Below are positions 1 through 21,435 of a DNA stretch of 64,000 bases, piece after piece. This DNA is from Macrostomum lignano (lineage: Eukaryota), in NCBI GenBank assembly GCA_002269645.1, contig NIVC01000397.1:184463-248462 (forward strand). The letters run 5' to 3'. The position numbers were made by a program, and so were the translations under genes. Under the pieces are notes generated by a model. It was not told the DNA's origin, did not search any database, and saw nothing but the letters and a program-made list of their open reading frames with translations. Within the stretch, counting starts at the first letter, position 1. Each line of letters begins with the position of its first letter.

Positions 1-489
1 CCTACCGTTCCTCGCGTTCCTAGCTTTCCAAGCTTTCCTAGCGTTCCTTCCGTTTCGTTTCTAGCGAACTCTAAGTTGTGTGCCAAGTTGACGCTTAAGT
101 TGAACTCCAAGACTCCCGACTTTGCGCGTGACTGCCTCTGGCTCTGATTGTTCCTGCTATCAGCTAGCAGGCCAGCTCAGATCGCCCGAAGCTAGCACTT
201 TCGCTCTCACCCCGCACCAGCCCGGCAGGGACTGCTGACGGTGGGCACCTCTGCGCGAGAACTGCTAAATCTGCACGAAGTGCGAGTCTCTTTCTCTCGT
301 CTTAGTTATTTGCTTCTACGAGCTCAGCACCTCACCGAAGGCTGCGACTCTGCGAAGCTGGTGGCAGCACTACCAACGCTACTAGATCAACCCGGAGACT
401 TCCCAGAGGAGCTCAAGCAACTGTACTTCACCGGGGCAGCGTTCCTATTGAAGGCCTCTAGACAACCACAGGCAAGAACCTGTACTTCA
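1..489 (+). repeat. 5' LTR (R/U5 part only)
   Basis: Matches 9059-9548; ends ...TGTACTTCA, followed by 1 nt and the TGG of the PBS. Confidence 0.95.
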
Positions 490-490
490 C

Positions 491-514
491 TGGTGACTCA
501 GCGGTGGGATTCGA
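491..514 (+). promoter_or_regulatory. Primer binding site, tRNA-Leu-like
   Basis: TGGTGACTCAGCGGTGGGATTCGA; its reverse complement TCGAATCCCACCGCTG(AGT)CACCA resembles a eukaryotic tRNA-Leu 3' end (..TCGAATCCCACCGCTGCCACCA, from memory). Confidence 0.75.
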
Positions 515-623
515 CGAGTCAACGACACGACTATCTGGGATCCGACAAGTCAAGATTCGACTACTACTACACCCAAGACAACCGCTCTTTCGAGTAAGAA
601 TTCGGCTATTCTACTAATTTGAA

Positions 624-1583
624 ATGTTTAACGAGAGAGAAGAGAGCCGGTGCAGCAGCCGGCTGGATCAGCACATCAGCAGTTCGAGACCTGCAGCAGC
701 ATCGGCTGCCGCAGCAGCAGCGGTCAACGACCTTGGTCAGCAGATGCCGCGGCGAAGTGCGAGAAGCGAAGTGTCCGAAGACCCGCCAGACGAGCTTCTG
801 CCAGGTTTGGACGACCTCGGCCAGAACATCAGGCCCCAGGATGTGAGAACGATGATGGCAGCTCTGCAGCAGCAGATGGAGCGGCCGGTAAGCAAATCTG
901 TTAAGATTGTAAAGTACACGCCCAGCCAGGACATCCACGTCTGGCTCGCCGCGTTCGAGCAGCGCTGCGAGATGGAGCGTATCGAAGACCCGATCGAGAT
1001 GAAGCAGCACCTCGTTGCGAGTCTAGATCTGGCAACCGCTTACCCGGCTCTGCTCAGTATGCACCTCCCACGCTATGCTGGCTACGAGGAGGTCAGGCAG
1101 CGACTGATCGAGAGATTCGCCCGCCACGGTGGCGCGGATGAATATCGAGAGCTGCTGAGGCGCCGTCAGCAAGGCAAGAATGAGTCAGCAGAAGAGTACG
1201 CTGATGCCCTGCGCACCTTGGGAGAGCGAGCGTACCCTCGAATGCACCCTGAGGATCGAGAGCGGGAGCTGGCTGATCAGTTCCTAGCTGGCATCAGGAC
1301 GACACCAGATCTGCGCGAGCGGCTCTATTGGGTCCGCCCGAACAATCTGCTGGCCGCTATTCGAGAACTCCATCGTCTGGAAGGCGCCAAGGAACTGGCG
1401 CAGCGCTCTGCTCAACCCCCGGTTCGCATGCTGAACGGGGAGCGCGACGGTGACCCGACGCCCGACGCCACCGCTCAAGCTCTCCTGGCTCTGACTGATC
1501 TGCTAGAGAAACAGCAGCGACTGCTAGACAACCTGGTGCAGCGTGACCAGCAGCAGAAACGAGTCCGCCGGCGAAAGCCATGA
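624..1583 (+). CDS. gag: Gag (capsid); the CCHC zinc knuckle continues in the -1 frame (1580-1651)
   Basis: Retrotransposon capsid-like segments (WLAAFEQRC, RQQGKNESAEEYADALRTL, LADQFLAGI); CYGCGQPGHRNAQC knuckle just downstream, one frame over. Confidence 0.9.
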   Translation: MFNEREESRCSSRLDQHISSSRPAAASAAAAAAVNDLGQQMPRRSARSEVSEDPPDELLPGLDDLGQNIRPQDVRTMMAALQQQMERPVSKSVKIVKYTPSQDIHVWLAAFEQRCEMERIEDPIEMKQHLVASLDLATAYPALLSMHLPRYAGYEEVRQRLIERFARHGGADEYRELLRRRQQGKNESAEEYADALRTLGERAYPRMHPEDRERELADQFLAGIRTTPDLRERLYWVRPNNLLAAIRELHRLEGAKELAQRSAQPPVRMLNGERDGDPTPDATAQALLALTDLLEKQQRLLDNLVQRDQQQKRVRRRKP

Positions 1584-1644
1584 TCTGCTATGGCTGTGGT
1601 CAGCCTGGTCATCGCAATGCACAGTGCCCGTTACGCCAGAACCA

Positions 1645-1651
1645 GGGAAAC
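1645..1651 (+). promoter_or_regulatory. Candidate -1 programmed ribosomal frameshift heptamer G GGA AAC
   Basis: Correct X XXY YYZ phase in the zinc-knuckle frame (CAG GGA AAC); the -1 frame stays open toward the protease. Confidence 0.65.
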
Positions 1652-1877
1652 GGCGAGACGGAGAGCGCCCACGGCAACGCCCTCCGCAGAGCCCAAGCCC
1701 CGGCTACTTGGCAGACTCCGAACGCTCACCAGAAGAAGAGGATGTCGGCTGCGCAGACGCCAATGCCCAGTCCGACAGTCGCTCATCAGTAAGTGAGGCT
1801 GAGTGCGGAGGTTTCGTGGACACCTCCGATGATAAAAAATCCATGCGCGTGAGGCTGATCCGTACGTCACCGGCCGA

Positions 1878-4409: not shown

Positions 4410-5293
4410 ACCTCCTTGATGATGTCCAAGACTGCGGGTCTCGGAATCTGGAGACGCCCATGGACCACGACTCAGAGGCCACTGAACAAGCAGCCCTTCT
4501 GATGACAGCCCACAACGCGAATCCAGACCAGCAATGTAAGTTCAACTCCCCGGAGTTTTGCGCTGAGAGTTCTCGCCGTGTTGACAGAGGCCAGACTCTC
4601 GCGACGGCTGCAAGGTCAACGCTCTGTCCCCCGAGCCGACAGACAGCTGCTCATCGCCTGTGCGGAAAGTCGAGTCCCCCTTTGCGACACCGCCCAGTGC
4701 TGGAGAAGACTCACCCAATGACGACGATGATCGAGCCGACGGCTACGGCTGCCTGCGACGAGGCGTGCTTCACGTGTTGCGTCTCGCCCTACAGCCAAGA
4801 GTCGCCTGGGCTGTGCAGTGGAGGCAAGTGCACTGCTCCAGCTGCGGAAATTCCTGTCAAGAGAGCGACGATGAGAACTTCGAAACGAGATCAGCGATCG
4901 TACGCCGACGTTGTGAGACAAAGTCCCTCGGAGCGACCTAATCCTGACGCCGACAAGACGGAGTCGCGTGATCAACTGCGAGCCACAGAAGCGGAGACTG
5001 AGGAAATCCGGAACCCTCAGCCATGCCGCGCCGTGCTCACTGATTTTCTGAGGATGCCGATGACGCGGCAACAGTTTGTCGACGCGCAGCGCGCCGACCG
5101 AGCAATCAGCTACGTGCTCAACTTGGTCGAGAACAAAGCCCTGAAGCCTGAGTTCGACGCCCGGTTGCGACTGACGAAGGAGCAGCGGAATCTGCTCGGA
5201 TATTATGATAATCTGCGAGAGGACAACGGCCTGCTGATGATCGATCTGACTGATGGCCAGCAGCCCCGAAGGTTGTCCTGCCCGAAGCTCTAG
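4364..5293 (+). CDS. pol: Pol part 2: long RH-IN tether and integrase N-terminal region (frameshifted segment)
   Basis: Continues the 81-bp repeats begun in part 1; ends with QRADRAISYV...YDNLREDNGLL, typical of sequence preceding gypsy IN. Confidence 0.75.
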   Translation: MEIRPDKTSEATADVDLLDDVQDCGSRNLETPMDHDSEATEQAALLMTAHNANPDQQCKFNSPEFCAESSRRVDRGQTLATAARSTLCPPSRQTAAHRLCGKSSPPLRHRPVLEKTHPMTTMIEPTATAACDEACFTCCVSPYSQESPGLCSGGKCTAPAAEIPVKRATMRTSKRDQRSYADVVRQSPSERPNPDADKTESRDQLRATEAETEEIRNPQPCRAVLTDFLRMPMTRQQFVDAQRADRAISYVLNLVENKALKPEFDARLRLTKEQRNLLGYYDNLREDNGLLMIDLTDGQQPRRLSCPKL

Positions 5294-5301
5294 ATGCCCA
5301 G

Positions 5302-6243
5302 GTGCTCCAGGAGCTCCACAGTTCGCCACTGTGTGGACACCTCGGCCAGACGAAGACGTTGAAGCGGCTACGTGAACGATTCTGGAGGCCCGGATTAGCC
5401 CGTGTCACCGAGAACTTTATCAGTAAGTGCCGCGCCTGTCTTGAAAGTAAATCCCGAAGACGAGACCGAGTACCTGTACAGAGCTTCCCTGTGTGCGAAG
5501 TCCTGGGAAGAGTACATTGCGATGTAGTAGGCCCTATCGCCCAGAAGAGCAAGAGCGGGAACCGCTACATCTTGACGCTATGCGACGCGACGTCGAAGTA
5601 CCCGTTCGCCTATCCGATGAGGAACCAGAAAGCCAAGACGGTCATCAAGATCCTGCAGGAGCGCTTGATCCCTGACTTTGGTGTACCATGCTGGATACAC
5701 ACTGATCAAGGAACCAATTTCACTGGCTCAGCTTTCAAGAAGTTCTGCGACCTGTTTGGCATCCGGCATACGACGACAACACCGTACAACCCAGCTTCTA
5801 ATGGGCAAGTCGAGAACCTCAACAAGCAGCTGAAGAGTGTCCTCACCTGCCTCCTCGAGCGCAACCATAACGACTGGGACACCTTCCTCCCAGCCTGCTT
5901 GATGGCGCTCCGCTCTAGTGTACACCCGGTGACAGGTTTCACGCCTCACTACCTGGTGTTTGGTCGAGACTTTCGACTACCAATCGACAACGCGATCAAG
6001 AAGCTGCCGGAGTATGCCAATCTGCCTGACTATGTCAAGGACTTCCAGCGCCGTTTAGACGAAGCGACTGAGCTAGCAAAGAACGCCTGCATCTGCATCA
6101 GCAACTGCGCGACGAGCACTATTCGAACCTGCCCGCTGCCAAGAAGCTCCAACCTGGTGACCTGGTTTTCCTCAACAACCCGGTGCTCGAACCGGATGAA
6201 GCGGCGAAGTTCCATCGACCTCGCAAAGCGCTGTACGAGGTAG
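5302..6243 (+). CDS. pol: Pol part 3: integrase HHCC zinc finger and DDE core
   Basis: LH-x6-GHLG...CRAC; HCDVVGP, HTDQGTNF, NGQVENLNK. Confidence 0.96.
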   Translation: MLQELHSSPLCGHLGQTKTLKRLRERFWRPGLARVTENFISKCRACLESKSRRRDRVPVQSFPVCEVLGRVHCDVVGPIAQKSKSGNRYILTLCDATSKYPFAYPMRNQKAKTVIKILQERLIPDFGVPCWIHTDQGTNFTGSAFKKFCDLFGIRHTTTTPYNPASNGQVENLNKQLKSVLTCLLERNHNDWDTFLPACLMALRSSVHPVTGFTPHYLVFGRDFRLPIDNAIKKLPEYANLPDYVKDFQRRLDEATELAKNACICISNCATSTIRTCPLPRSSNLVTWFSSTTRCSNRMKRRSSIDLAKRCTR

Positions 6244-6779
6244 TCGAACCCAAGGGCGAGGTCGTCTACAAGATTCGCCGTAGAGTGCCAAACCCGCGGG
6301 CCAGGCGCGACGAGCTAGTAGTCCATCGCCGGAATCTGCTACTCGTCCCTGATGCCGACTACCAGCTGACTTCGGATCCAGAAGTCGACCAGGCCAAGAA
6401 ACGCCGCAGGTCGACAGATGCCCCGGACGGTGCAGGACCCGCGACTCTGACACCGATTCCGGAGGACGATCCGGACGAGGACGATGATGATGATGACGCA
6501 TGGCCGGCCTTCCGGTGGCGCTTCCGGCCGTTGGCGATCCCGGATGTGCAGCCAGGAGGTGGACCGGTCACGACACCAGCGAACCAGGCAAGTGCATTTC
6601 GGCGTGAGCCACTGCCGTATGGTGATCGCCATGATGGTGTGCCTGGTTTGAATGCGTCTGCACCTGCTGCTTCTTTTTCACCTGCCCACGCGTCCCCCCT
6701 TCCCGAACCTTTTTCTGCGGCGCAGTCTCCTGCGCCACCTTCTTGCACCACTCGGTGGAAGCGTCTCCCATACCAGTAG
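6183..6779 (+). CDS. pol: Pol part 4: integrase C-terminal (GPY/F-like, SH3-type) region and acidic/Pro tail
   Basis: FHRPRKALYEVVE...VYKI...VVHRRNL resembles the gypsy IN C-terminal module; joins part 3 after a 1-nt shift near 6081. Confidence 0.75.
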   Translation: MLEPDEAAKFHRPRKALYEVVEPKGEVVYKIRRRVPNPRARRDELVVHRRNLLLVPDADYQLTSDPEVDQAKKRRRSTDAPDGAGPATLTPIPEDDPDEDDDDDDAWPAFRWRFRPLAIPDVQPGGGPVTTPANQASAFRREPLPYGDRHDGVPGLNASAPAASFSPAHASPLPEPFSAAQSPAPPSCTTRWKRLPYQ

Positions 6780-6870
6780 TGGTAGGTAGGCCAGTTAGGG
6801 ATCGGAGGCCGCCGAGAGGCTTCTGATTAGCGATCCTAGGGCCAAAACGTACGTTAGTCGCACCGCCCGC

Positions 6871-8013
6871 ATGCGTGTGCACAAATTAAAACCTTGCAGC
6901 GCAGAAATGCACAAGCGTCCGCTCCACGTGAGCTCAAGCTCCTCGTCCGATGCGGAGCAAGGGCGGCCTAGCCGTAGCCGGCGCCGACCTGGTACCCCGG
7001 TCTCGCCAGAGACCATGGGGATCCCGCGGCGCCCGCTGGAGACAATTAACCGGAGACTCAGGGCTGAAGGCAACGGCTCGGCGAGGCCGACGCGCCAGGT
7101 TGATCGGCGCCCTCACCGTCGCACGCCGTCTCCCGAGCCCCAGAGGCGGAATGGGAGGCCACTCCGAACATCGGCACCCAGGCGAAGCCCTTCGCCCGTT
7201 CTGGAGAGCCATGCAGCTCAACACCCCGCTCGGGGTCAACGACACTCGCCCGAAGTCATCGACCTCACGCGCGACTCGCCATCGCCAGACGCGACTGCGC
7301 GGACACTCATGGTCGACCGGATCGCGGCCGCTTTGGCTTACGTGCAGCTGGAACAGCAGGTGATGCGGGGCTTGGCGGACATCCGCCTCCAAGTCCGCAA
7401 TTCCCTTCCAGACATCGACGGGGCTCGGCCGGCGGCCCGTGAGCGAGTCGGGTCGGAGCACCACGGCAGGCCCGGCGGAACAGATGAACGCGGAGGGGAT
7501 CTCGACGACGCCAGGCATCCCGACGCGGCCCCGTCTCCGATGTCTTGGACCGATGACACTCAGGGAGCGGCCGCATGCTCCTCAGCTGTTTGGACCGACC
7601 TGGCCGCGTCGCTGCGCCGCACCCTGCCCAGGGCCCCGCCACCATCGCCCGAACGTCCGGCGGAAACGCTCGATACCGGCACTCAAACGGAGTCGCCAAT
7701 ACCGGAATACCGAGCTACCGTCATCGCTGCCGGCGCCAACCTGATAAGCGCTGTACTCGTCAGAGCGGCTCGGCAAGGCGGAGAAATCGTTGACCTCGGT
7801 GGCCCGATCTGGGCGGAGCTCCGTCAAACCACGGCCGAGGAGAGGAGCCGGTTATTCGCGGAGGCGGTCGGCCTGGCCGGCCCCGACCTGGAGCGGCCGA
7901 ACCGGCCGTACGCTCTCCACCTGGCGGCCGTCCGCGTTGCCCGATTCATGGGCGGCGGGGAAGAAGACCTGCCGATGCTCTTGATGACTCCGCGTCTGTG
8001 CTATTTTGACTGA
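6871..8013 (+). CDS. ORF3 of the retrotransposon: 380-aa non-env protein of unknown function
   Basis: Uninterrupted ATG-TGA ORF between the pol stop and the PPT; basic/Ser-Pro-rich N-half, EVIDLT motif, predicted helical C-terminal domain; no signal peptide or TM segment seen. Confidence 0.75.
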   Translation: MRVHKLKPCSAEMHKRPLHVSSSSSSDAEQGRPSRSRRRPGTPVSPETMGIPRRPLETINRRLRAEGNGSARPTRQVDRRPHRRTPSPEPQRRNGRPLRTSAPRRSPSPVLESHAAQHPARGQRHSPEVIDLTRDSPSPDATARTLMVDRIAAALAYVQLEQQVMRGLADIRLQVRNSLPDIDGARPAARERVGSEHHGRPGGTDERGGDLDDARHPDAAPSPMSWTDDTQGAAACSSAVWTDLAASLRRTLPRAPPPSPERPAETLDTGTQTESPIPEYRATVIAAGANLISAVLVRAARQGGEIVDLGGPIWAELRQTTAEERSRLFAEAVGLAGPDLERPNRPYALHLAAVRVARFMGGGEEDLPMLLMTPRLCYFD

Positions 8014-8403
8014 TTGGCGGCCGTACGCTGATGTACGCCCTGTTGACAATGAAGTTGCCCCGTTTGCCGCGCTAGTTAAGCGCCCTTATGCAGGAATTTT
8101 AAGCCGGTTGGCTTGTGTATTCAGGTATCGCCCGCGCAATATTTAGGCGCCATTTCTAGGGTGGGCCGGCGCCCCCACACCAAATTCGAGCACTAATTTT
8201 GCGGGCTGGAGCACGAGGAATAGTTAGGCGCAGGCTATTAGCGGGTTGGCGCCCCCGCGGTATCAGGCCACTATCTTTACGACCTGGCCAGTCGCGCAAT
8301 TTCACGAGCGCATTTGAAATTTTGTGTGTTTTCTTTTGTCAGTAAATTCACGTTTACTTTGTTTTAAATAAAGCGCGCGCCGCTTCACTCCGCCTCTTTA
8401 TTT

Positions 8404-8415
8404 GAACGGGGAGAG
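8404..8415 (+). promoter_or_regulatory. Polypurine tract
   Basis: GAACGGGGAGAG immediately before the TG of the 3' LTR. Confidence 0.85.
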
Positions 8416-9548
8416 TGTAGTGAGTCGCTAGTTTAGTTAGGCGCCGCACTAGTCAGCTGTTGCCCTCGCCTTCTCCCCAGGTTTCTGTCTGCCGCTGGGC
8501 AGTTGCCTGTCCCTCCCGCCTGTCCCTGGCCTGTCCTCTGCCCGTTTGTCTGTCTGTCTGTTTGTCCTCGTTTGCCCCTTTTGTCTCGCTTTCCCTTTTT
8601 GCAGTGCCCAGACAGCTTGGTCTGGCCTGCCTCTGTTTCGTTCTCTGTCAGGCATCTCCAAATTTGGAGTGCCTTCCTGTTTTCCGGTCCCTCGGTCACG
8701 AGTGCCTTCACTTGTGGGCCTTTTCCCCTTGTCATGTGAGTCAGTCACATGACAAGGCCCTCTTCCTTCTTTAGTCCAAAGTGCAATGATTTCATCATTG
8801 TACGCTGGGCTCGTGTTTATGGGGAGATCTCGTGCGCCCGGACCCCCCCTTGCCTCCTCTGAGGCAGGGCCCGCTTGTTTGTTGCTAAAAATAGCAACAG
8901 AGTCACTTATGACTCTCAGCGGGGGCCTTTCGTGCTATGGTGCAATCGATCCTCCCTATAAATGCAGCCCTTCTCCTGGCTTGGCTCAGACATGCCTTTC
9001 TTTCCTTCCGTTAACCGGCCCTTCCGTTTCAGCCTCTCGTTTCTGCGTTTTCAGCGTTCCTACCGTTCCTCGCGTTCCTAGCTTTCCAAGCTTTCCTAGC
9101 GTTCCTTCCGTTTCGTTTCTAGCGAATTCTAAGTTGTGTGCCAAGTTGACGCTTAAGTTGAACTCCAAGACTCCCGACTTTGCGCGTGACTGCCTCTGGC
9201 TCTGATTGTTCCTGCTATCAGCTAGCAGGCCAGCTCAGATCGCCCGAAGCTAGCACTTTCGCTCTCACCCCGCACCAGCCCGGCAGGGACTGCTGACGGT
9301 GGGCACCTCTGCGCGAGAACTGCTAAATCTGCACGAAGTGCGAGTCTCTTTCTCTCGTCTTAGTTATTTGCTTCTACGAGCTCAGCACCTCACCGAAGGC
9401 TGCGACTCTGCGAAGCTGGTGGCAGCACTACCAACGCTACTAGATCAACCCGGAGACTTCCCAGAGGAGCTCAAGCAACTGTACTTCACCGGGGCAGCGT
9501 TCCTATTGAAGGCCTCTAGACAACCACAGGCAAGACACCTGTACTTCA
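8416..9548 (+). repeat. 3' LTR (1133 bp)
   Basis: Starts TGTAGTGA after the PPT and ends TGTACTTCA; the last 490 bp match the window start. Confidence 0.93.
8957..8963 (+). promoter_or_regulatory. LTR TATA-like box
   Basis: TATAAAT about 540 bp into the LTR, upstream of a pyrimidine-rich R-like region. Confidence 0.55.
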
Positions 9549-9565: not shown

Positions 9566-9910
9566 CATTCCCAACGGAGTAGGTGAACCTCAAGCCGAGT
9601 TTGTCTCCGCTGGCTCCAGCTCTCAACACCACGCTGACGAATCCGCTCGCTCTCAGGGTCTTCCTCTCGCCAAGTAGGCCAGTCTGACTGAATATGGGAG
9701 ACTCGCTGAGCCTGGGCTCAACTCCCGTGTACACATTGACTGTATCGTCATGGGGCTGGCCTCCCTCGGCATCAAAGAGCTGCAACTCAACCGTCTGTTG
9801 AGGGTTCACAGCGATGGACCAGGCTCTCGATGAGCCCAATGGTCCTCTGGACGGATAAATTGCTTTGCTTCCCTCAATGTTTTTGATGAGTTCAGTCGGC
9901 ATCGGTAGTT
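9566..9910 (-). CDS. CUB exon, domain 18 (type C)
   Basis: tcccag|AA...AAT G|gtgagt; 345 nt; the donor is 17 bp from the LTR end. Confidence 0.88.
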
Positions 9911-12900
9911 CTGGGATAATGCGAGGGTAAATATGAGTCCAGCTATTATCCGGCCATTAGCAAACAGTGTAAGGCAAGAGTGCTGGCGATACTACACCTT
10001 TTCACGTTCAATTTTGATCAAAGTCCAGTTCTAAAAAAACTAGCGGAAATTCAATTCAGACTGAGGATAATTTTGTCTATGGCTAAACCTTACTTCGGTT
10101 AGAATGTTTTGAACTGGGGTTAGACTGGGCCCAACTGGACATGATCAAAATTGAACGTGAAAAGGTGTAAGAATGTGTTCGCTGGTTAAGTTTGTTACAC
10201 TGAACTCGGCAATTAATCATCGTTTCCTATCGAAGACACTATATATACCTTTTTACGTTCTGTTTGATAAAAACTGCAACCAATTTGGCCACGGCTCAGC
10301 CTGACGCAGCCGCAGCAATTTTCCATAGACAGCCACCGCTAGCGGCAACCAATTTGGTAAAAACTGCGAGCTATTTTGCCAGCTTGAAGATAGCAGCTCA
10401 ATAGCATAACAATAACGATAAAGAATGTTAACAATACATGCACGAAGTCAGAACATTATGTCCTCAGCATTCAAGCACCGATTGAAGTACGTCTGGGAAT
10501 GGTTGATCCAGCGCAGGCACTTGAGAGGCGTGATGCAGTTCAGTGCTTGCTGCACTTCTCTCTTCAGAATGCGCATCCTATGCTGATGCAGTGTCGCACC
10601 TGCTGCAGCAGCCAGTCCAGTATCTGCCAACTCTACCAGTTCGTTCATACGTGGTCACGATGTTCCTCACTGTCGGTTTCTTCATCCCCATCATTCTGCC
10701 AAGCTCTCTCCAGTCGTCGCCGCTCCTGTACGCTCTCACGATTCGCTCTCGATCCAGCTGACTTATCTTTTGGTACGGCCCACGATTCGCCATCAGAGCA
10801 GCTGCTATCTTCAAGCTGGCAAAATAGCTCGCAGTTTCTACCAAATTGGTTGCCGCTAGCGGTGGCTGTCTATGGAAAATTCTATGTCTATGGTCAGGCT
10901 GAGCCGTGGCCAAATTGGTTGCTGTTTTTATCAAATAGAACGTAAAAAGGTATATTATTACCCGCTGTCGTATAATCTGTGGTGACTGCCCGCCCAGTTT
11001 CGTCTATCCGCCCTACATGCTATTGCTGAACATAAACACGGTCCGAACTGTCGTTGTCATTTCCGCGGTTGAAATATCCCATAAACTGGAGTGAGTTAGT
11101 TTAGAAATAATTTTTCATTGATTTGACCAATAATGGAGCCACTGAGTCACCAACGGCAGTGCGAACCGCATTGAAAATTGAAGTACAGTAGAAAGACGCT
11201 AAATCGATTTTCCCAGAAATGAGCTGAAGGTAAGGAACATATAGTACGAGTATAATTGTCGCATCGCTAGTGCTTTTGCTCTCGAGAAGTCGGATTTTTC
11301 TAGCGCGAAGTTTTTTCGACCGAATTATTCTATAGCGAAGCCCCCTTCAGAGCCGTCTAGCTTCCGAATTCTAGCGATTCGGAAAATATTCGATCTTTAC
11401 AAGCGTGCACCTCATTTCTAAAAAAATCGAGTGTGCCGTTCACTTCAGTTGTCCATGGCAAACCGACTTAAGCATATCAAGCGTCTGTACACATTGAATG
11501 CTCTGTAATGAAGGCGTGTTTATACTTATTAAACGTGTTTGAGCAGTTGAACAATCATGTATCTGGGACTCAAAAGCTTATTTATAATATTTCCTTTAAA
11601 TGATGAATAGATGGAAAATGATCATATTTTACCTTCGCTCCCGCTCTGATACGACAGCTTGAAGATGTTGCCACTGACCCGCTTTGTGGTGACTCGAACC
11701 AGCACGGGACCTCTCAGCCTGAACTCTACAGAGGTCGCGTTCGTCATTGACCTGTGCTCAGAGACGAAGGCCAGCCTGTCCTCGCTGGGGTCAGCAGTCA
11801 TCTCGTACAGTCTGACAATATCTGCGTGAGACAGCTTCAGCGAGACCCAGCCTTGACGATCAATGAGCCACCTGTAGTCAGTCTCGAGGTCATACTTCAT
11901 CTCTTCTTCCGCAGGAAGCTGCTCGCCTTCAGAGCAGACAACATCGGCTTTTTCGTCTGTCAGGTTTCTCGATTTTACTAAAACGGTTTCATTCAGAGCG
12001 TACTGAGGAATGATACGAATATTAAAGATGTAAATTATTAGGTTGACGGAAACAGTAACTTCACTTTCTGTTTGTTTTGTTTTGCTTTGTTTTGTCACTC
12101 TCTGTAAATGTTTACTGACTGACTTAATTAACAACAACTTACTTCTGCTGTCAAGAGCCGAGTAAGATAAGTTGAAGCCCGCCTTGGTGACACTGTAGTC
12201 AGTAACGAATTGGATCAGCACCGGACCAACGACCTGGGCTGTTTTGTTATTTCTTGTCACAGTAAACACTTTCTCAGAATCCTGAGCATCTTCAGAAAGC
12301 TGAGTCTTCTCATAGAAACTGATTTTATCGATTCCCGCTTCAACGTCATACGAGTCAACCTTAATCTCGAGCAGGCTCAGATCGCCGATCCACCAGGCGT
12401 ACGTTTTGCTGTTTAAATAGTTGCCACTGCCGAAGTTCTCTGGGCATTGAAGCTTTCCTGAGTCGACTGAAAAGGCATCGAAAATTGAATAGACATCAGA
12501 TGCTTTGCATTGGCTCAAATTTAGACCCACCTTGCATGCTAAAATTTAACTTAAATAATAATAATTAACATTACCAATTACTATAAACAGTAATGAGAGT
12601 ATCTGGAACTCAGGAATTCGAAACTCACCCACGTATCGATCGAGATAATAATCGATTATAAAGCCTCTTGACGCGTTCTGACGATCAGTTTTAAACTGGA
12701 TCAACGCAGGTCCAATCAAAACATACTTTCTTGAGCTCCAGCTGTCTCCAGTCAGTGTGTATTTTCTGTTCTCAGTCTGCGGTTCCGCCGAAGAGTCAGT
12801 CTTTTCATAGAATTCAACCACATCGTTTGCGTCCTGAATGCCCATGCTTCTAACTGTCAAAAAGACAACTCTGCTCGATGGGATGTACCAACGATAGTCC

Positions 12901-15900
12901 ATCTGATGCTCGTAGGCTTCATACTCTTCATTCGGACACCTGATGCTGCCCGAATCGTTCAGCAGATTACGGGAAACTAAAAATTTAAAAGAAGTGGCTT
13001 GGTGGAGAAACACTCACGTGCATAAAAACCGAGCGTCGGAATACGCAGAGCTGCTAAATTTTACACCATGAACTCAAAATTTTAAACCAAGTAAATGCAT
13101 AAAACACCAAAATGGCTCACAAGTTCGTTCCTCAACCGTATAAGACAAACTGAAGCCTTGGCCAACAAGAGACTCATCCGTGCTGAACCGGATCAGCACG
13201 GGACCAATCAGCTTATACGTTACCGATGTCGCATTCGCCTGCGTTAGTGTGAACCTCAGCTTGCTCTCTTCTGGCTCATCGGTTTCTCCATCAGTCATCT
13301 CGTACAACTGGATGATGTCATTTCCGTAGCCAATGTCAGCAGATGTGACAGTGATGAGGACAAAATTCCTTCTGTTGATGGTCCATCTGTACTCCATCTC
13401 GTTAGCGTAAGTCGAGCTGGATTCCTCTGGACAGCGAAGGCTTCCAGAGTCCTCGCTAAGGTAGCGATGCACTGAAAGGAAGTAAGGCTTATGGTCTCAC
13501 CACGGTCTCGCGGTGCACTGAAAAGGGCAAGAGCTCACCGTTTCTGATTTGATAATCGAACTGAAAGCTAAGGACCAAATCATTGCAGTATCGAACAGAA
13601 CTAGACTCTTGTATCTGTTCCCAGTAAACGGAAACAGGTCCACTTTGACTGACGTGCTGTGACAATGTCAGTCCCTTGAACTGAGCCTCAGAGCTATCAT
13701 TTGAGAGTGCCTGAGTAAGCCAATTTCCAGCATAAACGAACAAACCGCAGGTATACGAATCGTAAAATTCTGCGTCTCCTTTGAAAAGAATATGAACGGT
13801 GAATTCATGACTCGGGTTTGGCGCAATGACCCAAACAATTTTTGCTTTTTCAGTCCTGTCGCTGGTATCAAATTTAGGGAAACTCCGTCTGGTACCTCGA
13901 CTGCTCTTCACTACTTCAACCGCATTTTCCACTGCAAGAAGGTTTGATTGGGATAGAAATGGTTCACGATTACGTTACATGTAGTTTACGTTCTCCAAAG
14001 GCTTACACTTCAAATCGGGATCTGACTGATATGCCAGCTGGAAGCTTCTCGGGCTGCCGTCTCCCGCTGCCGTGATGCGAATTAAAACAGATCCTCTCAG
14101 CCAGAACTCCGACTCGCTGGCACTCGCATCTGCTAGCACAAATCTTCTCTTGAGATCATCCTTGGACGTGGTGTTTTCGTACAGATGAAGCTTGTCTCCG
14201 TCCTGGAGATTGAGGGAACGAACATTGATGCGAACAGAACCGCTGCTTTGAATGATCCAGCTGTAATCCATGTCCAAGTCGAAAGCTGAACTATCCGACG
14301 AGTTTTGAGGGAACCTGATTTCTCCCAATCGTCCCGACAGTAAAACTTTAAGTTCAAAGAGGAATAGATCATGTAGACTAAAGTAGTATGACTATATTTT
14401 TACATTAGTTATTGTTAAAAAATGAAAACAAAGTATGTATAATTACCGTTTTCCACTGAATACTTAAGGCCGAACCCTCGCTTTGCTTCATTGGCGTCGG
14501 TTCTCAGCACCACGGTGACGAATCCGCTCGCTCTCAGCGTCTTCCTCTCGCCAAGTAGGCCAGTCTGACTGAATATGGGAGACTCACTGAGCCTGGGCTC
14601 AACTCCCGTGTACACACTGACTGTATCGCCATGCGGCTGGCCTCCCTCGGCATCAAAGAGCTGCAGCTCCACAGTCTGTTGAGGGCTCACAGCGATGGAC
14701 CAGGCTCTTGCAGAACTCGGTCCGCAGCTGCTTCGACCATCGGGCATGAGGCAGCCCTGCAGTCCGTCCAAGTTTCGCAAAAGCGCAGTTGTCATCGATA
14801 AATCTGCGGGGAAGTTATTTAGAAAAGTCACTGTTCCTATCTAGAGATATAAATTTATTGTCGCTTTCAGACTGCCTCACTTTGTCGGTTGACACTGAAC
14901 GTCGCCCCGAACGGCACTATCATCGGTCTCATCCTTCGCGATTGAAGCCGAACAACTGCTGGGCCTCTTAGTTTGAACTCGGTAGACATCAAATCGCTGA
15001 GCGGTGCATCAGTCAGGGAGAACACGCGACTCCTTGGAGTTGGGATCTTCGTCCTCTCGTGCAGCTCTAGCTTGTCGCAACCGCTTAGCAATTGAGCCTG
15101 CACGAATCGAATGCTGACCGCTGCTGTTGTGTCGACAACCCACCTGCGGTCAATCTCCATGTCGTAGCCATCAGTATCGCAGACATCCAGTCCAATGGCA
15201 TTCCTCAAGTTGCTTGACTGCACTCCAATTTCACCTTGAGTCTGTGTCAGAACACTGGATATTACTAAAATATTATAGAAACCGTGCATTATTCAGACAA
15301 TAGAAAATACCAAAGACGCGTAAGATGGAATCACAAACATCAAAGTGACATTAGCATACCGAATTGGTCTCCTATTTCATAGGAAAAGTTTAGAGCTCTT
15401 TGCATTGGCCGACCAGCTGTAACTAACTTGATCATAACAGGTCCGATCAGTCTGTATGTAGATGAAGTAGCATTCCCCTTCGTCAGTGTAATGTTTGCAG
15501 TTGACGAGTCCTTTCTCCATAACTGGATTTTGTCGCAGCAGTCTGAGATTTCCACCCCACTGAATTTGACTGCCACAGCTGCCTTTCGGTCGATTTTCCA
15601 AATGTAGTTTACCTGGGCTTTGGTAAATGATGGCGGGTTCACCCACCGAACTTCACCCGAGTCGCCTGACAGACCTGAAAGTTCGAATTCAACTTTTAAA
15701 TAGTCTTATGAAGCAGCTTTCATAAATGAAAATAATTCATGAATGCATATATTTTTATGTTTTGAAACGAGCCAGGTAAAACAATGCAGAAATCTATTAT
15801 GAACTCCTAAATTCTAATTAAAATCAAATTATAATCAAACTTTGAACAAAAATTACTATACTAATTATTTCTTACTTGAGGTTTCTTCTAGATAGTATGT

Positions 15901-18900
15901 CATGTGAAACCCGTCACGATTGTTACTGCCGTCAGTTTTGAACCTGATGAGCACTGGTCCCTTCAAGGTGTATGTTTCATTGTATCCGCTCCCTGTAAGC
16001 TTGTACTTTAGTTTATTTTCGTCAGGCTTCTCATGCACCGGTGAGTTTTCGTACAAGCCGATCCAATCATAACTACTCTCAGTATCATAGCGAATAAACG
16101 TAAGCACCACCGGTTTCTGCTCATTGATGCTCCACTCGTAGTCAACGTTGTTATCGTACTTAGAGTATCCATAGTTCTCCGGATATGAAAGGTTTCCACT
16201 GTCCACTGGAAGGATTTAAGGAAAATATAATAACGAGTAAAAAGCGGTTGTTTAGTATGTGCAGACAAAATATTCCCAGAAAGACTGAAAGCTTTTAGGC
16301 AATATGTGCTAACAAATTTCACGGAAACATTGCGAATTGGATGCTTACAGATTTTTCTGCCAGCCTGATAGTAGAGCTGAAAGCCGGGAGCAGTAACTTG
16401 AGAGTTCGTTCTGAACCGGATGAGCACTGGTCCGACCAGCGTAATATTCGACGTTTCTGCAGCCTCCTGAGTCACATTGAGCTTCCATCTCTGCCGATCT
16501 GGCTCTCCACTCTCATCGACCTTCTCATAGAACTCGATGGTGTCTTGAATGTCAATAAAGTCGAACCGAATGACGATGATGCTTTTTCGATTGATTGTCC
16601 ATCGGTAGTCCATGGACTTCTCATAGTTCACCAGTGCGGTCTCGGGGCAGAAAATATTGCCGGAGTCATAATTCAACATTCGGTGTACTGCAAAACGTAA
16701 ATGAGAGTATTTCTACACAGTAAGTTTTATGCTAGCTAATAATCATCTCTCAGTTAGTAGCTTAAAGAGAATTCAAAAGAATTGGAATTCTTGATATCCA
16801 CTAGTTTTCTACGAGCCAAAATTCCAGTTCACAACCATGCAACTGGCTGTGCAGTGTTTATACTTTCTTCGAAAATACATGCGTGCGAAACCGTAAGTTT
16901 TATCTTCAAACAACATGGTCGGATTTCGATAGGATACGAATCGACAATTCGATAAGACCCTAAAGTCACAACTCAATGAAATGAACATGCTGAGATAAGA
17001 ATCGGCAATTCGATAAGATCCTAAAGTCACAACTCAATGAAATGAGCATTCTGAGATAAGAATCGACAATTCGATAAGATCCTAAAGTCACAACTCAATG
17101 AAATGAACATGCTGAGATAAGAATCGACAATTCGATAAGACCCTAAAGTCACAACTCAATGAAATTAACATGCTGAGATAAGAATCGACAATTCGATATG
17201 ACCCTAAAAATACAACTCAATGAAATGAATATTCTGACTTACAAGTCCGCTCTTCAGTAGTGTAGGACAGATTGAATCCCTGACCAACAAAATCTTTGCC
17301 CGTGACGAACCGGACCATGACTGGACCCGGCAGTCGGTAGGCCCCCCGTGCTGTAGCATTCGACTGAGTCAGAACGAACTTCAGCTTGGCCTGCTGTGGC
17401 TCGTCGGTCAAGTAGGTCTCCTCGTACAGCTCGATGACACCACTCCCAATGTCCACGGTTGTGACCTCGATAACAACTAAGTTAAGCCGGTTGACTGTCC
17501 ATCTGTACTCCATTTCGCTCTCGTAGGTCTCACCAGACACCTGAGGACATCGAATTGACCCCGAGTCTTTTATGAGAGGCTCTTGAGCTGAAAAAAGAAA
17601 GAAAAACAACGATGCTCTTAGCTGCTTGCCAGGGAAATAAAATTCGACTAAAATCTGAACGCATTTTGAGTATTTCATTAAAGAACATTGCAAATAACTA
17701 CTTATAGAAGACAATGACTGCATTAATACATAAAAATGCTAACATTCATTACCGTTTGCTAACTGAAACTTGAACTCTTGCTGAAATCTAATGAAGCTCG
17801 AAGCCCTTGGTCGATAAACCACAGTCAGAGGACCGTTGTACCTGACGATGCTCGCATACGGGATCCGCTGGAGTGGCTCAGAACTCGACAAGCTGGTGAC
17901 GGCTCCCTCATAGAGACTTATTGCGATTCCTGACACCACTGGTAGCTCTGGCAGGTTCAACAGAACTGAGCGCCCGGGCTTGGCTGCAATGACCCATGCA
18001 GTAGGCGACCCGTTCTCGGGGATAAGAACTCTCGAGCCTCGATAGCCGTCAATCAGCTCAACAGCCATGTCAGTATCTGCAGTGTCACACAAGCAGTTGC
18101 GTCAATCGCATATCTATGCTTGTCACCAAAGAGACAGCGAAGACAAATTTTTAGGAAATTGTCACTCACTGGCCGACTGGTCAGCTGCGTACGACAGCCG
18201 AAAGCCTCTCGACTCGCCGTCTCCGCTGGCAACTAATCGAATCATGACGGGACCGGACAGACGGAACTCCGACTCTCTGGAGCTCGCATCCGTCACCAGG
18301 AATCTCAGAGCCGATTCGTCCTCAGACGTTGTGTTCTCGTAGATGTACAGCTTGCCATTGGGATGGAGGCTTATGGAGGTGAATCGGATGCTGAGTCTAA
18401 TGTCTCTGCTAATGAACCAGCGGTAATCTATGTCGCTGTTGAACTCCGCTGAGCCCTTGGGGAACTCTATCCGCCCACTCGGTTCCTCTTGAGAAGCTTA
18501 ATGAAAGTGTGGAAATATTACTGATTGAGTTTTAGTCACCAACAAAGTTGTTGAAATTGTCATTGTATTGACTGTGTATATTCTGATTCACTTTTACCTG
18601 ATTTATGTGACTCACGCATTTGGCTATTATGCCCTACATCGCACTATATGCTAAGCTTTTCGTTGCACTTCGATTATCATAGTTCAAAACGATTCTTACT
18701 GCTGTACACAGTGTAGGAGAGACCGAGCCCACGTCGTGATCGTCTGGCTTCTGTCGTCAGCACCACAGTGACGAATCCGTTCGCTCTCACGGCCTTCCTC
18801 TCACCAAGTAGTCCAGTCTGACTGAATATCGGGGACTCGCTCAGCAGAGGACGAACGCCATTATACACGCTTATCGTATCCGTATGAGGCTGACTTCCAT

Positions 18901-21435
18901 CGGCATCAAATAGCTCGAGCTCAACGATTTGCTGGGGATTCACGGCGATAGACCATGCTCTTGTTGCGACGTTGCTCACAGCGATGTCGGTACCTTTACT
19001 TTGGTAACAGATTCTCTCTCCCTCTTCATTTTTGATTATTTCAGTAGGCATTTCCAGATCTGAAGTGAGAATGGAATAATCATTGGAATGGTCTGAAAGC
19101 AGAGTCACCCTAAACTTTAGCAAGTCACTTTAAGTCCAGAATTACCTTCGTCGCTACTGCTGTAGGACAGTCTAAAAACTCGTCCCCTTGTTTTTGTCCT
19201 CGTAATCTGCACCAGCACAGGACCGAACAGTCGGAAACGCGACGTCCCTTCTCTCTCCTTTGGTCCATCGGTGAAGACGGGCTCCTTGTCTGGAGTTGTC
19301 GTCATCTGGTAGATCCGAGCGAGGTCAGAGAAGGACAGCTTGAGGTCGATTCTCCCGGGTCGGTCAATGAGCCACTGGTATTCGATGCTAACACTGCTGG
19401 TGTCTCGATCCGAGATTTCCAGCTCTGAGCAGATTGCGTCGTCGCTGGGCTCGGTGAAAGTTCTGTATCGAACTAAAATTGCGAAAATTGGGTAGCTAGT
19501 CAACTATCAGCTCGACCACGTATACTAATTCCAATTATTTTTATCCTTTTAGCCATCATTGAATAACTCGTGAGACAATAGCCTGACAACAACGTTACTC
19601 ACCCAATGATTCCTCAAGCGTGTAGGTTAGGTTGAATCCCCTCTCTCCGACGCTACTATCTGTGCTAAATCGAATTAGCACAGGAGCAATAAGCACAAGC
19701 ACTTGGGATGTAGCGTTATTAGGATCGATTCGGAATTTCGGAGTCCTGAGATACGTTGTTTCGAGATCGTCCGTACTCTCGAAAATCTCCAAGCGGTCGT
19801 ATGGGGTCTCCAGTTCCACAAAGTGGAATCGAATGGCTACAGCCTTCGGCCCGCGAATGGTCCAGTTGTAGACTTTGGAGTTCTCATAGATGACGCCGGG
19901 CTCCCCGAAGTTTTCCGGACACTGAATTGTTCCAGTGTCGGCCGGGACTGAAACTGTGGATCAGGGACCACATCAGTACTTGGAGAAACAGTGCTCACAG
20001 AACTGCTTTAATTGCAAAACAGTCTAGAACTTTTGATGGTTTTACGAATTTTGACTGCCTCATCTTGTCTGTCAGCCAACACTTTAACTGCTACAAATTG
20101 ACCGCCGGCCCTAGCCTAAATTATCGGCAGTGAAATTCGGGATCCGAATTCTGACTGTTTATGACGATTGCAACACAATTAGTATATTTCCAGCGAATAG
20201 CTACTGATAACATTAATAAAGCGTTTTAACATTCTCTTTAACGTTTTAACATAGCTCTTCATCATATGACAGGATAGAAGTATATATGGAATACGCATAC
20301 AGACAGACAGACAGTATAACTGCATAAAAGCGTTTTTTATTTATTGAAAGCCGTAAGGTGGGGTTTCACCTTGATCAATTTGTGAAATTTGTCAAGAAAT
20401 GTGTTTATAACGATTGTTTCTATGGAAGGTTTCTGTAGAAAAAAAACGCACTTTTGAGGTAGCTTTCTGTATCAAAATTTATAACGAATATCACCCATTT
20501 TGCCTTGCATTTCCCCAGGTAAGTAAATTGCCCCCTAGATAATCCAGATAAGTGGGAAACATACATCATTTTGATAAGGTAACTTTTTAAATTGTAGCTT
20601 TAGAAACCCTTAAATAAACCCCGGAAGAGCACATGATCGCTTCACGATTTGCAAATAGGACGATTAATTATTGCAATAGTTCTTCGACATAGAATTTCTA
20701 TTTTTCGACATAGCAACTGAAAGTAAATAGTCAGCAAAACTTACCAGTACATCTATAAAAGTAGGAAACTACAAATATCTGTCACGAATAAATTTGGGTC
20801 AGTAACTGACTACTCCGGTATCCCTAATTCTACATGCTAGGACCTGAGTTAGTGACTGCTGAGAGTCTAGAGATAAGAGTCTAACGCACATTTGGATTCA
20901 TCACAGTGGTGGCCCATGAACTTACCTATGGCTGGAGCGTTTCAATTTGTTGACAGAAACAATATTTTGTTTCTTGAATTTGTAAATTTGTATATATGTA
21001 GTACATTTACTTGAGAATTTTAGTACCGTTTTAAAACTGATATTTGGATCAACCCATCGATCAGGGATGAGAGCAAACAGCCATGGAAGAACTCAGTCAT
21101 AAATACAAGTCCTACCTGTTATTGATAACACCATCAAGCGCATGTTATCAATGGCTAATAGATAGCTAATGTTGAGTATGCGTAAATACAGTCATCAATT
21201 ATCTTACAGATGACTGTGCAATGTTACTCTGGGCTTCAAAACATCACATTACGGTCAGCCAGTCGGTCGAAAATCAAACTCGATCAGAGGCTGCAGTTCT
21301 CAGTCCCTAGCATTAGGATGCGACGCAGTTGAAATGTTGGCAAGAGCAATCAGACTCACCCGCGACAGCAGAGCCGGTTTCAAATGCCAAGAGGCTGCCT
21401 AGGAAGGCAGCGAGTATCAGTTGCAGCAAATCCAT
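9566..21435 (-). CDS. Large secreted multi-CUB-domain protein (cubilin-like architecture); 19 exons visible, >2090 aa, 3' end outside window
   Basis: Signal-peptide exon plus 18 exons of 315-393 nt, each a multiple of 3, flanked by AG/GT in phase 1 and encoding one CUB-like domain (DSG.I.CP...Y....Y.W.I ... GPVLIRF.TD......GF.L.Y). Confidence 0.9.
9995..10167. mobile_element. Tc1/mariner-type MITE (173 bp)
   Basis: TIR CACCTTTTCACGTTCAATTTTGATCA(+10 bp with 1 mismatch) at both ends; TA at 9993-94 and 10168-69. Confidence 0.85.
10246..10952 (-). mobile_element. Internally deleted IS630-Tc1-mariner element
   Basis: ~150-bp TIRs (TACCTTTTTACGTTCT.TTTGATAAAAAC...), TA flanks; retains the transposase N-terminal HTH (MANRGPYQKIS..RIVRAY..TVRNIV..YERTGRV) and C-terminal tail (ITPLKCLRWINHS..RCL), but no DDE core. 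Confidence 0.85.
11633..11977 (-). CDS. CUB exon, domain 17 (type B)
   Basis: ttttag|TA...GAA G|gtaaaa; 345 nt; YRWLIDRQG. Confidence 0.85.
12143..12466 (-). CDS. CUB exon, domain 16 (type A)
   Basis: tttcag|TC...AGA A|gtaagt; 324 nt; DSGKLQCPENFG..FVTDYSVTKAGF. Confidence 0.88.
12629..12976 (-). CDS. CUB exon, domain 15 (type G)
   Basis: ttttag|TT...GTG G|gtgagt; 348 nt. Confidence 0.88.
13121..13471 (-). CDS. CUB exon, domain 14 (type F)
   Basis: tttcag|TG...ACT T|gtgagc; 351 nt. Confidence 0.88.
13539..13931 (-). CDS. CUB exon, domain 13 (type E)
   Basis: ttgcag|TG...AAC G|gtgagc; 393 nt; AVEV..RGTR, WVIAPNP. Confidence 0.8.
14007..14345 (-). CDS. CUB exon, domain 12 (type D)
   Basis: ttaaag|TT...AAG T|gtaagc; 339 nt; YENTTS..ESEF..GDG. 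Confidence 0.85.
14447..14803 (-). CDS. CUB exon, domain 11 (type C)
   Basis: ccgcag|AT...AAC G|gtaatt; 357 nt. Confidence 0.88.
14881..15264 (-). CDS. CUB exon, domain 10 (unique type Y)
   Basis: ttttag|TA...CAA A|gtgagg; 384 nt; RRWVV..GCDKLEL..GPAVVRL. Confidence 0.78.
15360..15674 (-). CDS. CUB exon, domain 9 (unique type X)
   Basis: tttcag|GT...TTC G|gtatgc; 315 nt; DSGEVRW..YIWKI..CCDKIQLW..GPVMIK. Confidence 0.82.
15876..16205 (-). CDS. CUB exon, domain 8 (type A, most canonical)
   Basis: ttccag|TG...TCA A|gtaaga; 330 nt; SYPENYG..DTESSYDWI..FKTDGSNNRDGF. Confidence 0.92.
16349..16687 (-). CDS. CUB exon, domain 7 (type G)
   Basis: ttgcag|TA...ATC T|gtaagc; 339 nt; DSGNIFCP..MDYRW..GPVLIRF. 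Confidence 0.88.
16941..17230. repeat. 61-bp tandem repeat, ~4.7 copies (CUB intron)
   Basis: Unit tcgacaattcgataagaccctaaagtcacaactcaatgaaatgaacatgctgagataagaa at 16941, 17002, 17063, 17124, 17185. Confidence 0.92.
17243..17587 (-). CDS. CUB exon, domain 6 (type F)
   Basis: tttcag|CT...ACT T|gtaagt; 345 nt; DSGSIRCP..EMEYRWT..GQGFNLSY. Confidence 0.88.
17753..18076 (-). CDS. CUB exon, domain 5 (type E)
   Basis: ctgcag|AT...AAC G|gtaatg; 324 nt; AVEL..RG.R, WVIAAKP. Confidence 0.8.
18170..18496 (-). CDS. CUB exon, domain 4 (type D); not in the ORF track
   Basis: attaag|CT...GCC A|gtgagt; 327 nt; GRIEFPKG..DYRWFI..YENTTS..GPVMIRL..GFRLSY. Confidence 0.85.
18700..19059 (-). CDS. CUB exon, domain 3 (type C)
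   Basis: cttcag|AT...AGC A|gtaaga; 360 nt; RAWSIAV..SESPIFSQTGLLGERK. Confidence 0.88.
19146..19472 (-). CDS. CUB exon, domain 2 (type B)
   Basis: ttttag|TT...GAA G|gtaatt; 327 nt; YQWLIDRPG..GPVLVQ. Confidence 0.85.
19603..19953 (-). CDS. CUB exon, domain 1 (type A)
   Basis: ccacag|TT...TTG G|gtgagt; 351 nt; DTGTIQCPENFG..ELETPYDRLEIF..FSTDSSVGERGF. Confidence 0.88.
21360..21435 (-). CDS. CUB gene exon 1, signal peptide MDLLQLILAAFLGSLLAFETGSAVA
   Basis: ATG, hydrophobic core, AxA cleavage-like end, then G|GTGAGT donor (phase 1). Confidence 0.8.

Follow-up and report, generated by a model that had tools for sequence, protein, structure and literature searches.

A gene of Macrostomum lignano encoding degenerate CUB modules in a seven-class super-repeat order

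Long arrays of CUB domains, such as those of cubilin, DMBT1 and the CSMDs, are usually viewed as strings of roughly equivalent ligand-binding modules. In titin and nebulin, modules of a single fold have been differentiated into position-specific types, and the ordered block of these types is repeated. Here we describe a minus-strand gene of Macrostomum lignano in which CUB-like modules are arranged in such ordered blocks. It runs from position 21435 to position 9566 of a stretch of 64,000 nucleotides (contig NIVC01000397.1 of assembly GCA_002269645.1, positions 184,463 to 248,462; called here the window) and continues beyond the left edge. An earlier note, made from the letters of the window, had proposed between these two positions a secreted, possibly lineage-specific array of 18 divergent and Cys-poor CUB-like domains, each encoded by one exon, without EGF or protease domains. 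It had further assigned these domains to classes A to G plus two unique modules, X and Y, in the order ABCDEFG / AXYCDEFG / ABC..., and had attributed the array to duplication of a seven-domain block.

Cubilin, a peripheral membrane receptor with 27 CUB domains that is anchored at the membrane through amnionless, resembles the M. lignano protein in having very many CUB domains in tandem and no transmembrane segment, and in both proteins some modules carry the acidic triad of the Ca2+ site used in ligand binding. It differs by its N-terminal stalk and eight EGF-like repeats, neither of which is present in M. lignano, and by its canonical CUB domains, with which the 23 Cys-poor and degenerate modules described here show no colinearity. 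In PCPE-1, residues Glu183, Asp191 and Asp233 hold Ca2+ and form salt bridges with a lysine of the ligand, which is stabilised by the Tyr preceding the second acidic residue (PMC6372009). Ca2+-binding CUB domains generally engage their ligands through the Ca2+ site (PMC8051872), and in cubilin, C1r/C1s/MASP, PCPE-1 and neuropilin a basic ligand side chain is clamped by it (PMC6372009, PMC8051872). One class of M. lignano modules, class A, keeps the equivalents of the three acidic residues of PCPE-1 together with a Ser and a Tyr. By contrast, PCPE-1, C1r/C1s/MASP and neuropilin combine two to five CUB domains with EGF, protease or other modules and have kept the CUB disulfides, whereas the M. 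lignano modules are without canonical Cys pairs and 19 of the 23 are without the Ca2+ site. The likeness to the super-repeats of titin and nebulin concerns the architecture only, a M. lignano module being more similar to the module at the same position of the next block than to those beside it; titin and nebulin are sarcomeric and consist of Ig/FnIII domains or nebulin repeats, whereas the M. lignano protein consists of CUB modules, is predicted to be extracellular, comprises about three blocks and has no known periodic partner.

The stop-to-stop frames found between 21.5 and 9.5 kb contain open segments that carry a common loose motif (SG.i.cP...Y.....Y.W.I ... D.i..YE.T ... GPVLIRF.TD.S...GF.LsY), and the gene comprises, in the window, a stop-free chain of a signal-peptide exon and 18 one-domain exons (Table 1). 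Translation starts at the ATG at 21435, and exon 0, whose product MDLLQLILAAFLGSLLAFETGSAVA was recognised as a signal-like peptide by eye only, closes with a GT donor at 21360 in phase 1. Exons 1 to 18 are 315-393 nucleotides (nt) long, each is preceded by a pyrimidine tract and an AG acceptor and followed by a GT donor, all their boundaries are in phase 1-1, and each encodes one domain of about 100-130 amino acids (aa). Exon 18 closes at position 9566, the last donor of the gene within the window, and the extent given in the earlier note therefore corresponds to the start codon and to this donor. The spliced product is 2093 aa long and contains 0 stops when the acceptors at 19953, 18496, 15674 and 11977 are used; these replaced the acceptors at 19947, 18487, 15665 and 11926, which were dropped after comparison with the transcript-based protein PAA83892.1.

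Over its whole length, the 2093-aa product matches residues 9-2101 of PAA83892.1 (M. lignano BOX15_Mlig033186g1, automatically named "CUB domain-containing protein") with 100% identity. PAA83892.1 maps to NIVC01000397.1, to which the window is identical over an overlap of 31.5 kb. The GenBank models of GCA_002269645.1 are based on RNA-seq data assembled with genome guidance (PMC5730564), and the exon chain is thus supported by transcripts. M. lignano, in which transgenesis is established, is a recent polyploid with a redundant assembly (PMC5730564). The gene is multi-copy, the sister copies being 93-98% identical at the protein level, and a homeologous copy, called here g2, is found on NIVC01000052.1. 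These results show that the gene in the window is real and transcribed and that it is copy g1 of a multi-copy, homeologous gene. Both GenBank and UniProt already list it, as a CUB protein that is uncharacterised.

Extension of the gene to the left of the window revealed five further one-domain exons followed by a terminal micro-exon of eight codons, (D)G|TNTTGWI, and a TGA. The whole gene comprises 25 coding exons, 19 of them in the window, and its product of about 2680 aa consists of the signal-like peptide, 23 back-to-back modules and an eight-residue tail. Its C-terminus reads ...STQSLDGTNTTGWI and then stop. The full protein lacks a hydrophobic C-terminal tail and therefore has neither a transmembrane segment nor a glycosylphosphatidylinositol (GPI) anchor signal, and a Pfam scan of the full 2689-aa protein gave CUB only, with no EGF and no protease domain. 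The protein contains 33 N-x-S/T sequons, one of which (NAT motif) recurs at the same loop in eight domains, and it is predicted to be secreted and N-glycosylated. The 18 one-exon domains that had been counted from the letters are thus all present in the window, but they are part of a gene of 23; the absence of EGF and protease domains held for the whole protein, and the leftward part contributed no anchor or other domain.

To describe the order of the modules, numbered D1 to D23 from the N-terminus, Smith-Waterman scores and neighbour-joining (NJ) trees were used. Seven recurring classes appear in a fixed order, ABCDEFG / A-X-Y-CDEFG / ABCDEFG' / A, that is, three ordered blocks of seven or eight modules of which the second has eight. 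Every class named in the earlier note was recovered in the NJ tree of the 18 window domains (bootstrap 42-100%), the domains grouping by class. In this tree and in that of all 23 domains, respectively, the bootstrap values were 98% and 88% for class B, 100% and 100% for class C, 99% and 98% for class D, 68% and 97% for class E and 100% and 100% for class F. Support was weak for class A, for which A(1,16) reached 80% in the 18-domain tree and the class 47% in the 23-domain tree, and for class G (G(7,15), 42% and 45%). The motif PEN[FY]G, previously noticed as the mark of class A, is found in D1, D8 and D16. Domains 19 to 23 belong to classes D, E, F, (G) and A, which completes the third block in the way expected from the scheme of the earlier note, although D22 stands at position G outside the G cluster and is divergent. 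Modules X (D9) and Y (D10) are unique as had been claimed, D10 being closest to the class B domain D17.

The order was also examined by a lag analysis. The mean similarity between domains peaked at offsets (lags) of seven (158), eight (133) and 15 (206), compared to 59-93 elsewhere, and 20 of the 23 modules have their best partner at lag 7, 8 or 15. The order of the domains was then shuffled, and the highest mean similarity among the lags represented by eight or more pairs was recorded. The observed value was reached by 41 of 20000 orders for the 18 window domains and, when all 23 were used, by 1 of 20000. This statistic replaced an earlier one that included lags with three pairs and was noisy (16/10000 for 18 domains, 194/10000 for 23 domains). 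Lag profiles were flat for the cubilin of the sea urchin, for a cubilin-like protein from a nemertean and for two further CUB arrays, one bacterial and one from a mollusc; the periodicity is therefore not shared by CUB arrays in general. No description of a super-repeat built of CUB domains was found in the literature searched.

Relatives were sought by an exhaustive search of 1.84 billion representative proteins with a profile of the 18 window domains. The top matches were two M. lignano "CUB domain-containing proteins" with 1955 and 1448 bits, whereas the next match scored 476 bits, and only M. lignano copies ranked above generic CUB arrays, in agreement with the proposal of a lineage-specific protein. 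The nearest matches from outside Macrostomum were bacterial CUB arrays of the type IX secretion system (T9SS), cubilin-like and DMBT1-like proteins and uncharacterised mollusc proteins, all at a generic per-domain level. Class-specific hidden Markov models (HMMs) run against the other 150 profile matches identified no protein with all classes and no hidden orthologue. No orthologue outside M. lignano was found in the proteins searched, in which other macrostomid proteomes may be unrepresented. The bacterial arrays (for example P0003, P0006 and Aureivirga proteins), which gave the best of these outside matches with 476 and 280 bits, resemble the M. lignano protein in being secreted and in having 13-15 or more CUB-like modules. 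They differ in that their tandem modules are almost identical to one another, the lag profile being flat (P0003), and in carrying PKD domains and a Por secretion tail, and they are prokaryotic and not orthologous.

Since cubilins are among the generic profile matches and also form a long CUB array without a transmembrane segment of their own, the protein could be regarded as a cubilin orthologue or a cubilin-like endocytic receptor held at the membrane via a partner protein. Cubilin orthology is, however, largely refuted already, and we consider this explanation very improbable. The signal-peptide exon is spliced straight to D1, leaving neither EGF repeats nor an N-terminal stalk, whereas sea-urchin cubilin matches the Pfam families EGF, hEGF, EGF_3 and EGF_CA. 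The Pfam CUB score of the 23 degenerate modules is 129.7 bits, compared to 2362 bits for the 27 canonical domains of sea-urchin cubilin. BLASTP alignments with cubilins showed 21-26% identity and were local and non-colinear, one region of the query matching several cubilin regions, and the cubilins tested (sea urchin, nemertean) lack lag periodicity.

The 18 window domains can all be aligned as a single family, in which one Trp is invariant. Among the single window modules, only D1 (27.7 bits) and D8 (30.0 bits) passed the cutoff of the Pfam CUB family (PF00431, 21.4 bits), the score of the others being weak or absent, and over the whole protein the 129.7 bits are distributed in three stretches. 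A HMMER comparison of the 18-domain profile with the PDB matched CUB domains from PCPE-1 (2e-9) and from cubilin (6e-8); the solved structures reached were PCPE-1 CUB1/CUB2, end to end, cubilin CUB5-8 and enteropeptidase. AlphaFold2 models were made from single exons with an alignment of the 18 domains of the gene itself. For D11 (class C) and D13 (class E), which represent the two most divergent classes, the predicted local distance difference test (pLDDT) scores were 77.8 and 71.0, respectively. Both models were all-beta sandwiches, the CUB fold being a beta-sandwich of about 110 residues. Their Foldseek neighbours in the PDB were mostly CUB domains (C1r CUB2, Neto2, PCPE-1, neuropilin, spermadhesins) with template-modelling (TM) scores of 0.5-0.67. 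Only 21 cysteines are present in the 2613 domain residues of the 23 domains, and seven domains contain none. The canonical pattern of CUB domains, four Cys that form two disulfides, is absent: the residue preceding the invariant Trp is never a Cys in the 23 domains, and the third canonical position is a Cys in D9 and D23 only. The modules are degenerate, disulfide-free modules of the CUB fold, and the Cys-poor, divergent character noticed beforehand applies to the whole array.

The columns of the Ca2+ site were mapped onto Glu183, Asp191 and Asp233 of PCPE-1 through the HMMER alignment and the numbering of PMC6372009, and in each module we read the Glu, the two Asp, a Ser two positions past the last Asp and an upstream Tyr. 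Only the four modules of class A, namely D1, D8, D16 and D23, have the full Tyr/Glu/Asp/Asp/Ser set, which is incomplete in each of the remaining 19. D1 and D8 have also retained the Tyr immediately before the second acidic residue. The residues of the site are kept in the class A modules of the sister copies as well. Because the full signature is confined to class A and because Ca2+-binding CUB domains generally bind ligands through this site, we infer that each block would contain one binding-competent module followed by six spacer or structural modules. The class A module opening each block would be the Ca2+-dependent ligand binder, and four equivalent binding modules would be placed about seven modules apart, the six non-binding, disulfide-free CUB-like modules between them serving as spacers. 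A multivalent protein of this kind would suit the cross-linking or lining up of a repetitive or multimeric extracellular partner. With about 3.5-4 nm per CUB domain, it would form an elongated string of modules of roughly 80-90 nm if extended.

The recurrence of the seven classes in a fixed order indicates that the array expanded through duplication of a block of seven modules. Synonymous divergence (dS) between paralogous modules is saturated in most pairs (dS >1 or not computable), whereas the 23 modules of g1 and g2 pair one-to-one with a dS of 0.065; the super-repeat therefore long predates the genome duplication of the species. The introns of separate blocks show no detectable similarity, only exonic pieces coming up as repeats. 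Two pairs are exceptions to saturation, D11-D18 in class C (dS 0.54) and D14-D21 in class F (dS 0.40). A central tract of about 240 nt is common to exons 14 and 21 with only about five mismatches, whereas the ends of the two exons have diverged, a pattern that points to gene conversion. Classes C and F have been partly homogenised by gene conversion after the block duplication. The closest pair varies among classes (A, D16-D23; C, D11-D18; D, D4-D19; E, D5-D20; F, D14-D21), which argues against a single clean order of duplication; for this reason and because of the exon 14/21 tract, a single clean block triplication was rejected. The block duplication proposed earlier is thus retained, although not as one clean event. 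Since D10 scores best against D17, module Y may be a diverged B, in which case the second block would contain a diverged B and one inserted module, X.

Comparison of g1 with g2 over 2555 aligned codons gave a non-synonymous divergence (dN) of 0.028 for the dS of 0.065, a dN/dS of 0.43 (Fisher p 5.5e-11 versus neutrality), the introns differing by 7.7%. Neither copy has a disrupted exon among the 23 that encode domains. With a ratio significantly below 1, the gene is constrained, under a purifying selection that is not strong. The fastest classes between homeologs are A (pN/pS 0.69) and E (0.62); for class A versus the rest, the non-synonymous to synonymous counts differ (nominal p 0.029, without correction for multiple testing). 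D8 is the only module that hints at positive selection, with 10 non-synonymous changes and 1 synonymous change relative to its homeolog, a ratio of about 2.5 on counts that are too small to test.

Copy g1 carries two insertions in its introns. A Ty3/gypsy-type long terminal repeat (LTR) retrotransposon of 10.2 kb, antisense to the gene, begins 17 nt past the exon 18 donor, so that intron 18 measures 10.3 kb in g1 and about 0.14 kb in g2. It is flanked by a 4-bp target-site duplication, GAAG, and the empty site is intact in g2 (NIVC01000052.1); the element is young and copy-specific. Intron 17, which contains a Tc1/Sleeping Beauty-like fragment, is about 1.7 kb long in g1 compared to about 0.7 kb in g2. 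These insertions, together with several database models of sister copies that are truncated or misjoined, might suggest that the gene is decaying or is an annotation artefact, at least in g1. We regard this as most improbable, since both insertions are intronic and the GTGAGT donor of exon 18 is untouched, the 19 exons in the window all have open frames and consensus splice sites, none of the 23 domain exons is disrupted in either of two copies, between which dN/dS is significantly below 1, and the gene models are transcript-based.

Taken together, these results lead us to favour, with moderate confidence, the reading that g1 is a CUB-only super-repeat gene whose product would be a secreted, multivalent, Ca2+-dependent binder or scaffold, a function deduced from sequence features. 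The product could instead be a bulk material of secretory or structural use, as in mucus, the eggshell, an adhesive, or a seminal or gland secretion. Its modules would then act only as a long glycosylated filler or polymer with no specific Ca2+-dependent ligand site, and the super-repeat would be an accident of the history of block duplication. This is possible, though rather unlikely. In its favour, the protein is lineage-restricted and made only of repeats, its sequons are numerous and its dN/dS of 0.43 is fairly high, features often seen in secreted proteins that evolve fast, and both the disulfides and the Ca2+ site are lost in most modules. However, the seven classes are still distinct and ordered despite the saturation of synonymous sites, which argues for position-specific constraint rather than interchangeable filler, and the full Ca2+ signature has been retained in exactly the four class A modules of both homeologs. 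A more specific form of the binder or scaffold reading, which we put forward as a doubtful conjecture, is that the protein could be a Macrostomum-specific extracellular ruler or cross-linker, holding four Ca2+-dependent class A binders at a fixed spacing of about seven modules by means of six specialised, disulfide-free spacer classes derived from CUB domains, to match a periodic or oligomeric partner; class A would then evolve fast because this partner evolves fast. Such a partner might belong, for example, to a gland secretion, an adhesive, the eggshell or the reproductive-tract matrix. To our knowledge, a protein of this kind would be the first super-repeat scaffold made of CUB domains.

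Several points weigh against the binder or scaffold reading. The Ca2+ site of class A is predicted by alignment alone and the signal peptide is a judgement by eye. The D11 and D13 models, made from an alignment of paralogues only, are of moderate confidence and lean towards one common fold. The fastest homeolog divergence, in class A, could reflect relaxed constraint rather than conserved binding, and g1 may not be spliced correctly over the 10.3-kb intron carrying the retrotransposon. Mlig033186 was not mentioned in any paper found, the supplements of M. lignano papers that were searched contain no entry for Mlig033186, Mlig029297 or Mlig028314, and no expression, localisation or binding data for the gene were found in the literature searched.

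Table 1. Exons of the CUB super-repeat gene and mobile or repetitive elements in the window
Feature	Position	Strand	Remarks
Exon 0, start codon and signal-like peptide MDLLQLILAAFLGSLLAFETGSAVA	21360..21435	-	Phase-1 donor; signal called by eye
Exon 1, D1, class A (CPENFG)	19603..19953	-	Full Ca2+-site signature Y/E/D/D/S; Pfam CUB 27.7 bits
Exon 2, D2, class B	19146..19472	-	Domain tree
Exon 3, D3, class C	18700..19059	-	Domain tree
Exon 4, D4, class D	18170..18496	-	Domain tree
Exon 5, D5, class E	17753..18076	-	Most degenerate class, sister to C; domain tree
Exon 6, D6, class F	17243..17587	-	Domain tree
Exon 7, D7, class G	16349..16687	-	Closes super-repeat 1; domain tree
Exon 8, D8, class A (YPENYG)	15876..16205	-	Opens super-repeat 2; full Ca2+-site signature; Pfam CUB 30.0 bits
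Exon 9, D9, class X	15360..15674	-	Unique; domain tree
Exon 10, D10, class Y	14881..15264	-	Unique; best match class B domain D17
Exon 11, D11, class C	14447..14803	-	86% nt identity with exon 18; AlphaFold2 CUB-like beta-sandwich
Exon 12, D12, class D	14007..14345	-	Domain tree
Exon 13, D13, class E	13539..13931	-	AlphaFold2 CUB-like beta-sandwich
Exon 14, D14, class F	13121..13471	-	Near-identical tract of ~240 nt common to exon 21, outside the window
Exon 15, D15, class G	12629..12976	-	Closes super-repeat 2; domain tree
Exon 16, D16, class A (CPENFG)	12143..12466	-	Opens super-repeat 3; full Ca2+-site signature
Exon 17, D17, class B	11633..11977	-	Domain tree
Exon 18, D18, class C	9566..9910	-	Closes at GT donor; exons 19-24 lie left of the window
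Ty3/gypsy-type LTR retrotransposon in intron 18	1..9548, continuing left of the window	+	Antisense to the gene; LTRs, target-site duplication, open reading frames
LTRs of the gypsy-type element	8416-9548; other 1 to ~490, cut by the window edge	+	1135 nt, 98.5% identical
Reverse transcriptase/RNase H of the gypsy-type element	1878-4409	+	
Integrase of the gypsy-type element	5302-6243	+	
Tc1/Sleeping Beauty-like transposase helix-turn-helix (HTH) fragment in intron 17 (9911-11632)	10581..11003	-	HTH_SB 3.3e-07
Minisatellite	33887-35127		34 nt x 36 copies
Minisatellite	39300-40220		82 nt x 11 copies
Minisatellite	46670-47973		21 nt x 62 copies
Minisatellite	49234-50236		32 nt x 31 copies

If the donor of exon 17 were read through, the sequence just past it (window 11625-11632) would add GKI and then a stop, and the UniProt model A0A1I8JK63 of a sister copy (1970 aa) ends exactly as such a read-through would; a truncated isoform of 17 domains may therefore exist through intron retention after exon 17. 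A minisatellite of five copies of a 61-nt unit (93% match) is found in intron 6 (16933-17237), and a non-LTR retrotransposon fragment (RNase H, zf-RVT) lies at 23265-24308 on the minus strand, about 2 kb upstream of the start codon. Farther along the window, the region 33887-61134 is dense in long minisatellite arrays, several of which mimic long open reading frames; several arrays are present beyond the four listed in Table 1. The GC skew at 42-48 kb is strongly strand-biased, ranging from -0.51 to +0.39. A 350-aa open reading frame with an F-box domain (PF00646, 23.6 bits) at 52465-53517 on the minus strand may be a single-exon gene; an exact look-up of its ATG-started form returned no database record. 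Finally, a reverse-transcriptase fragment (RVT_1, under the Pfam threshold) at 57256-58140, also on the minus strand, is probably a decayed non-LTR element.

The new descriptive points concern the super-repeat, its absence in the other CUB arrays tested and the confinement of the Ca2+ signature to the module that opens each block; the gain is one of interpretation, with no new fold or system. The gene also illustrates gene conversion at the level of exons within a repeat gene, and a dated, copy-specific retrotransposon insertion beside a splice site in a neopolyploid genome. For CUB proteins, it means that one fold has been split into seven position-specific classes whose order was held through saturating divergence. 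It would thereby provide a natural example of a repeat protein that converts copies to spacers while the regular spacing of its active sites is kept, only the block-opening module looking binding-competent.

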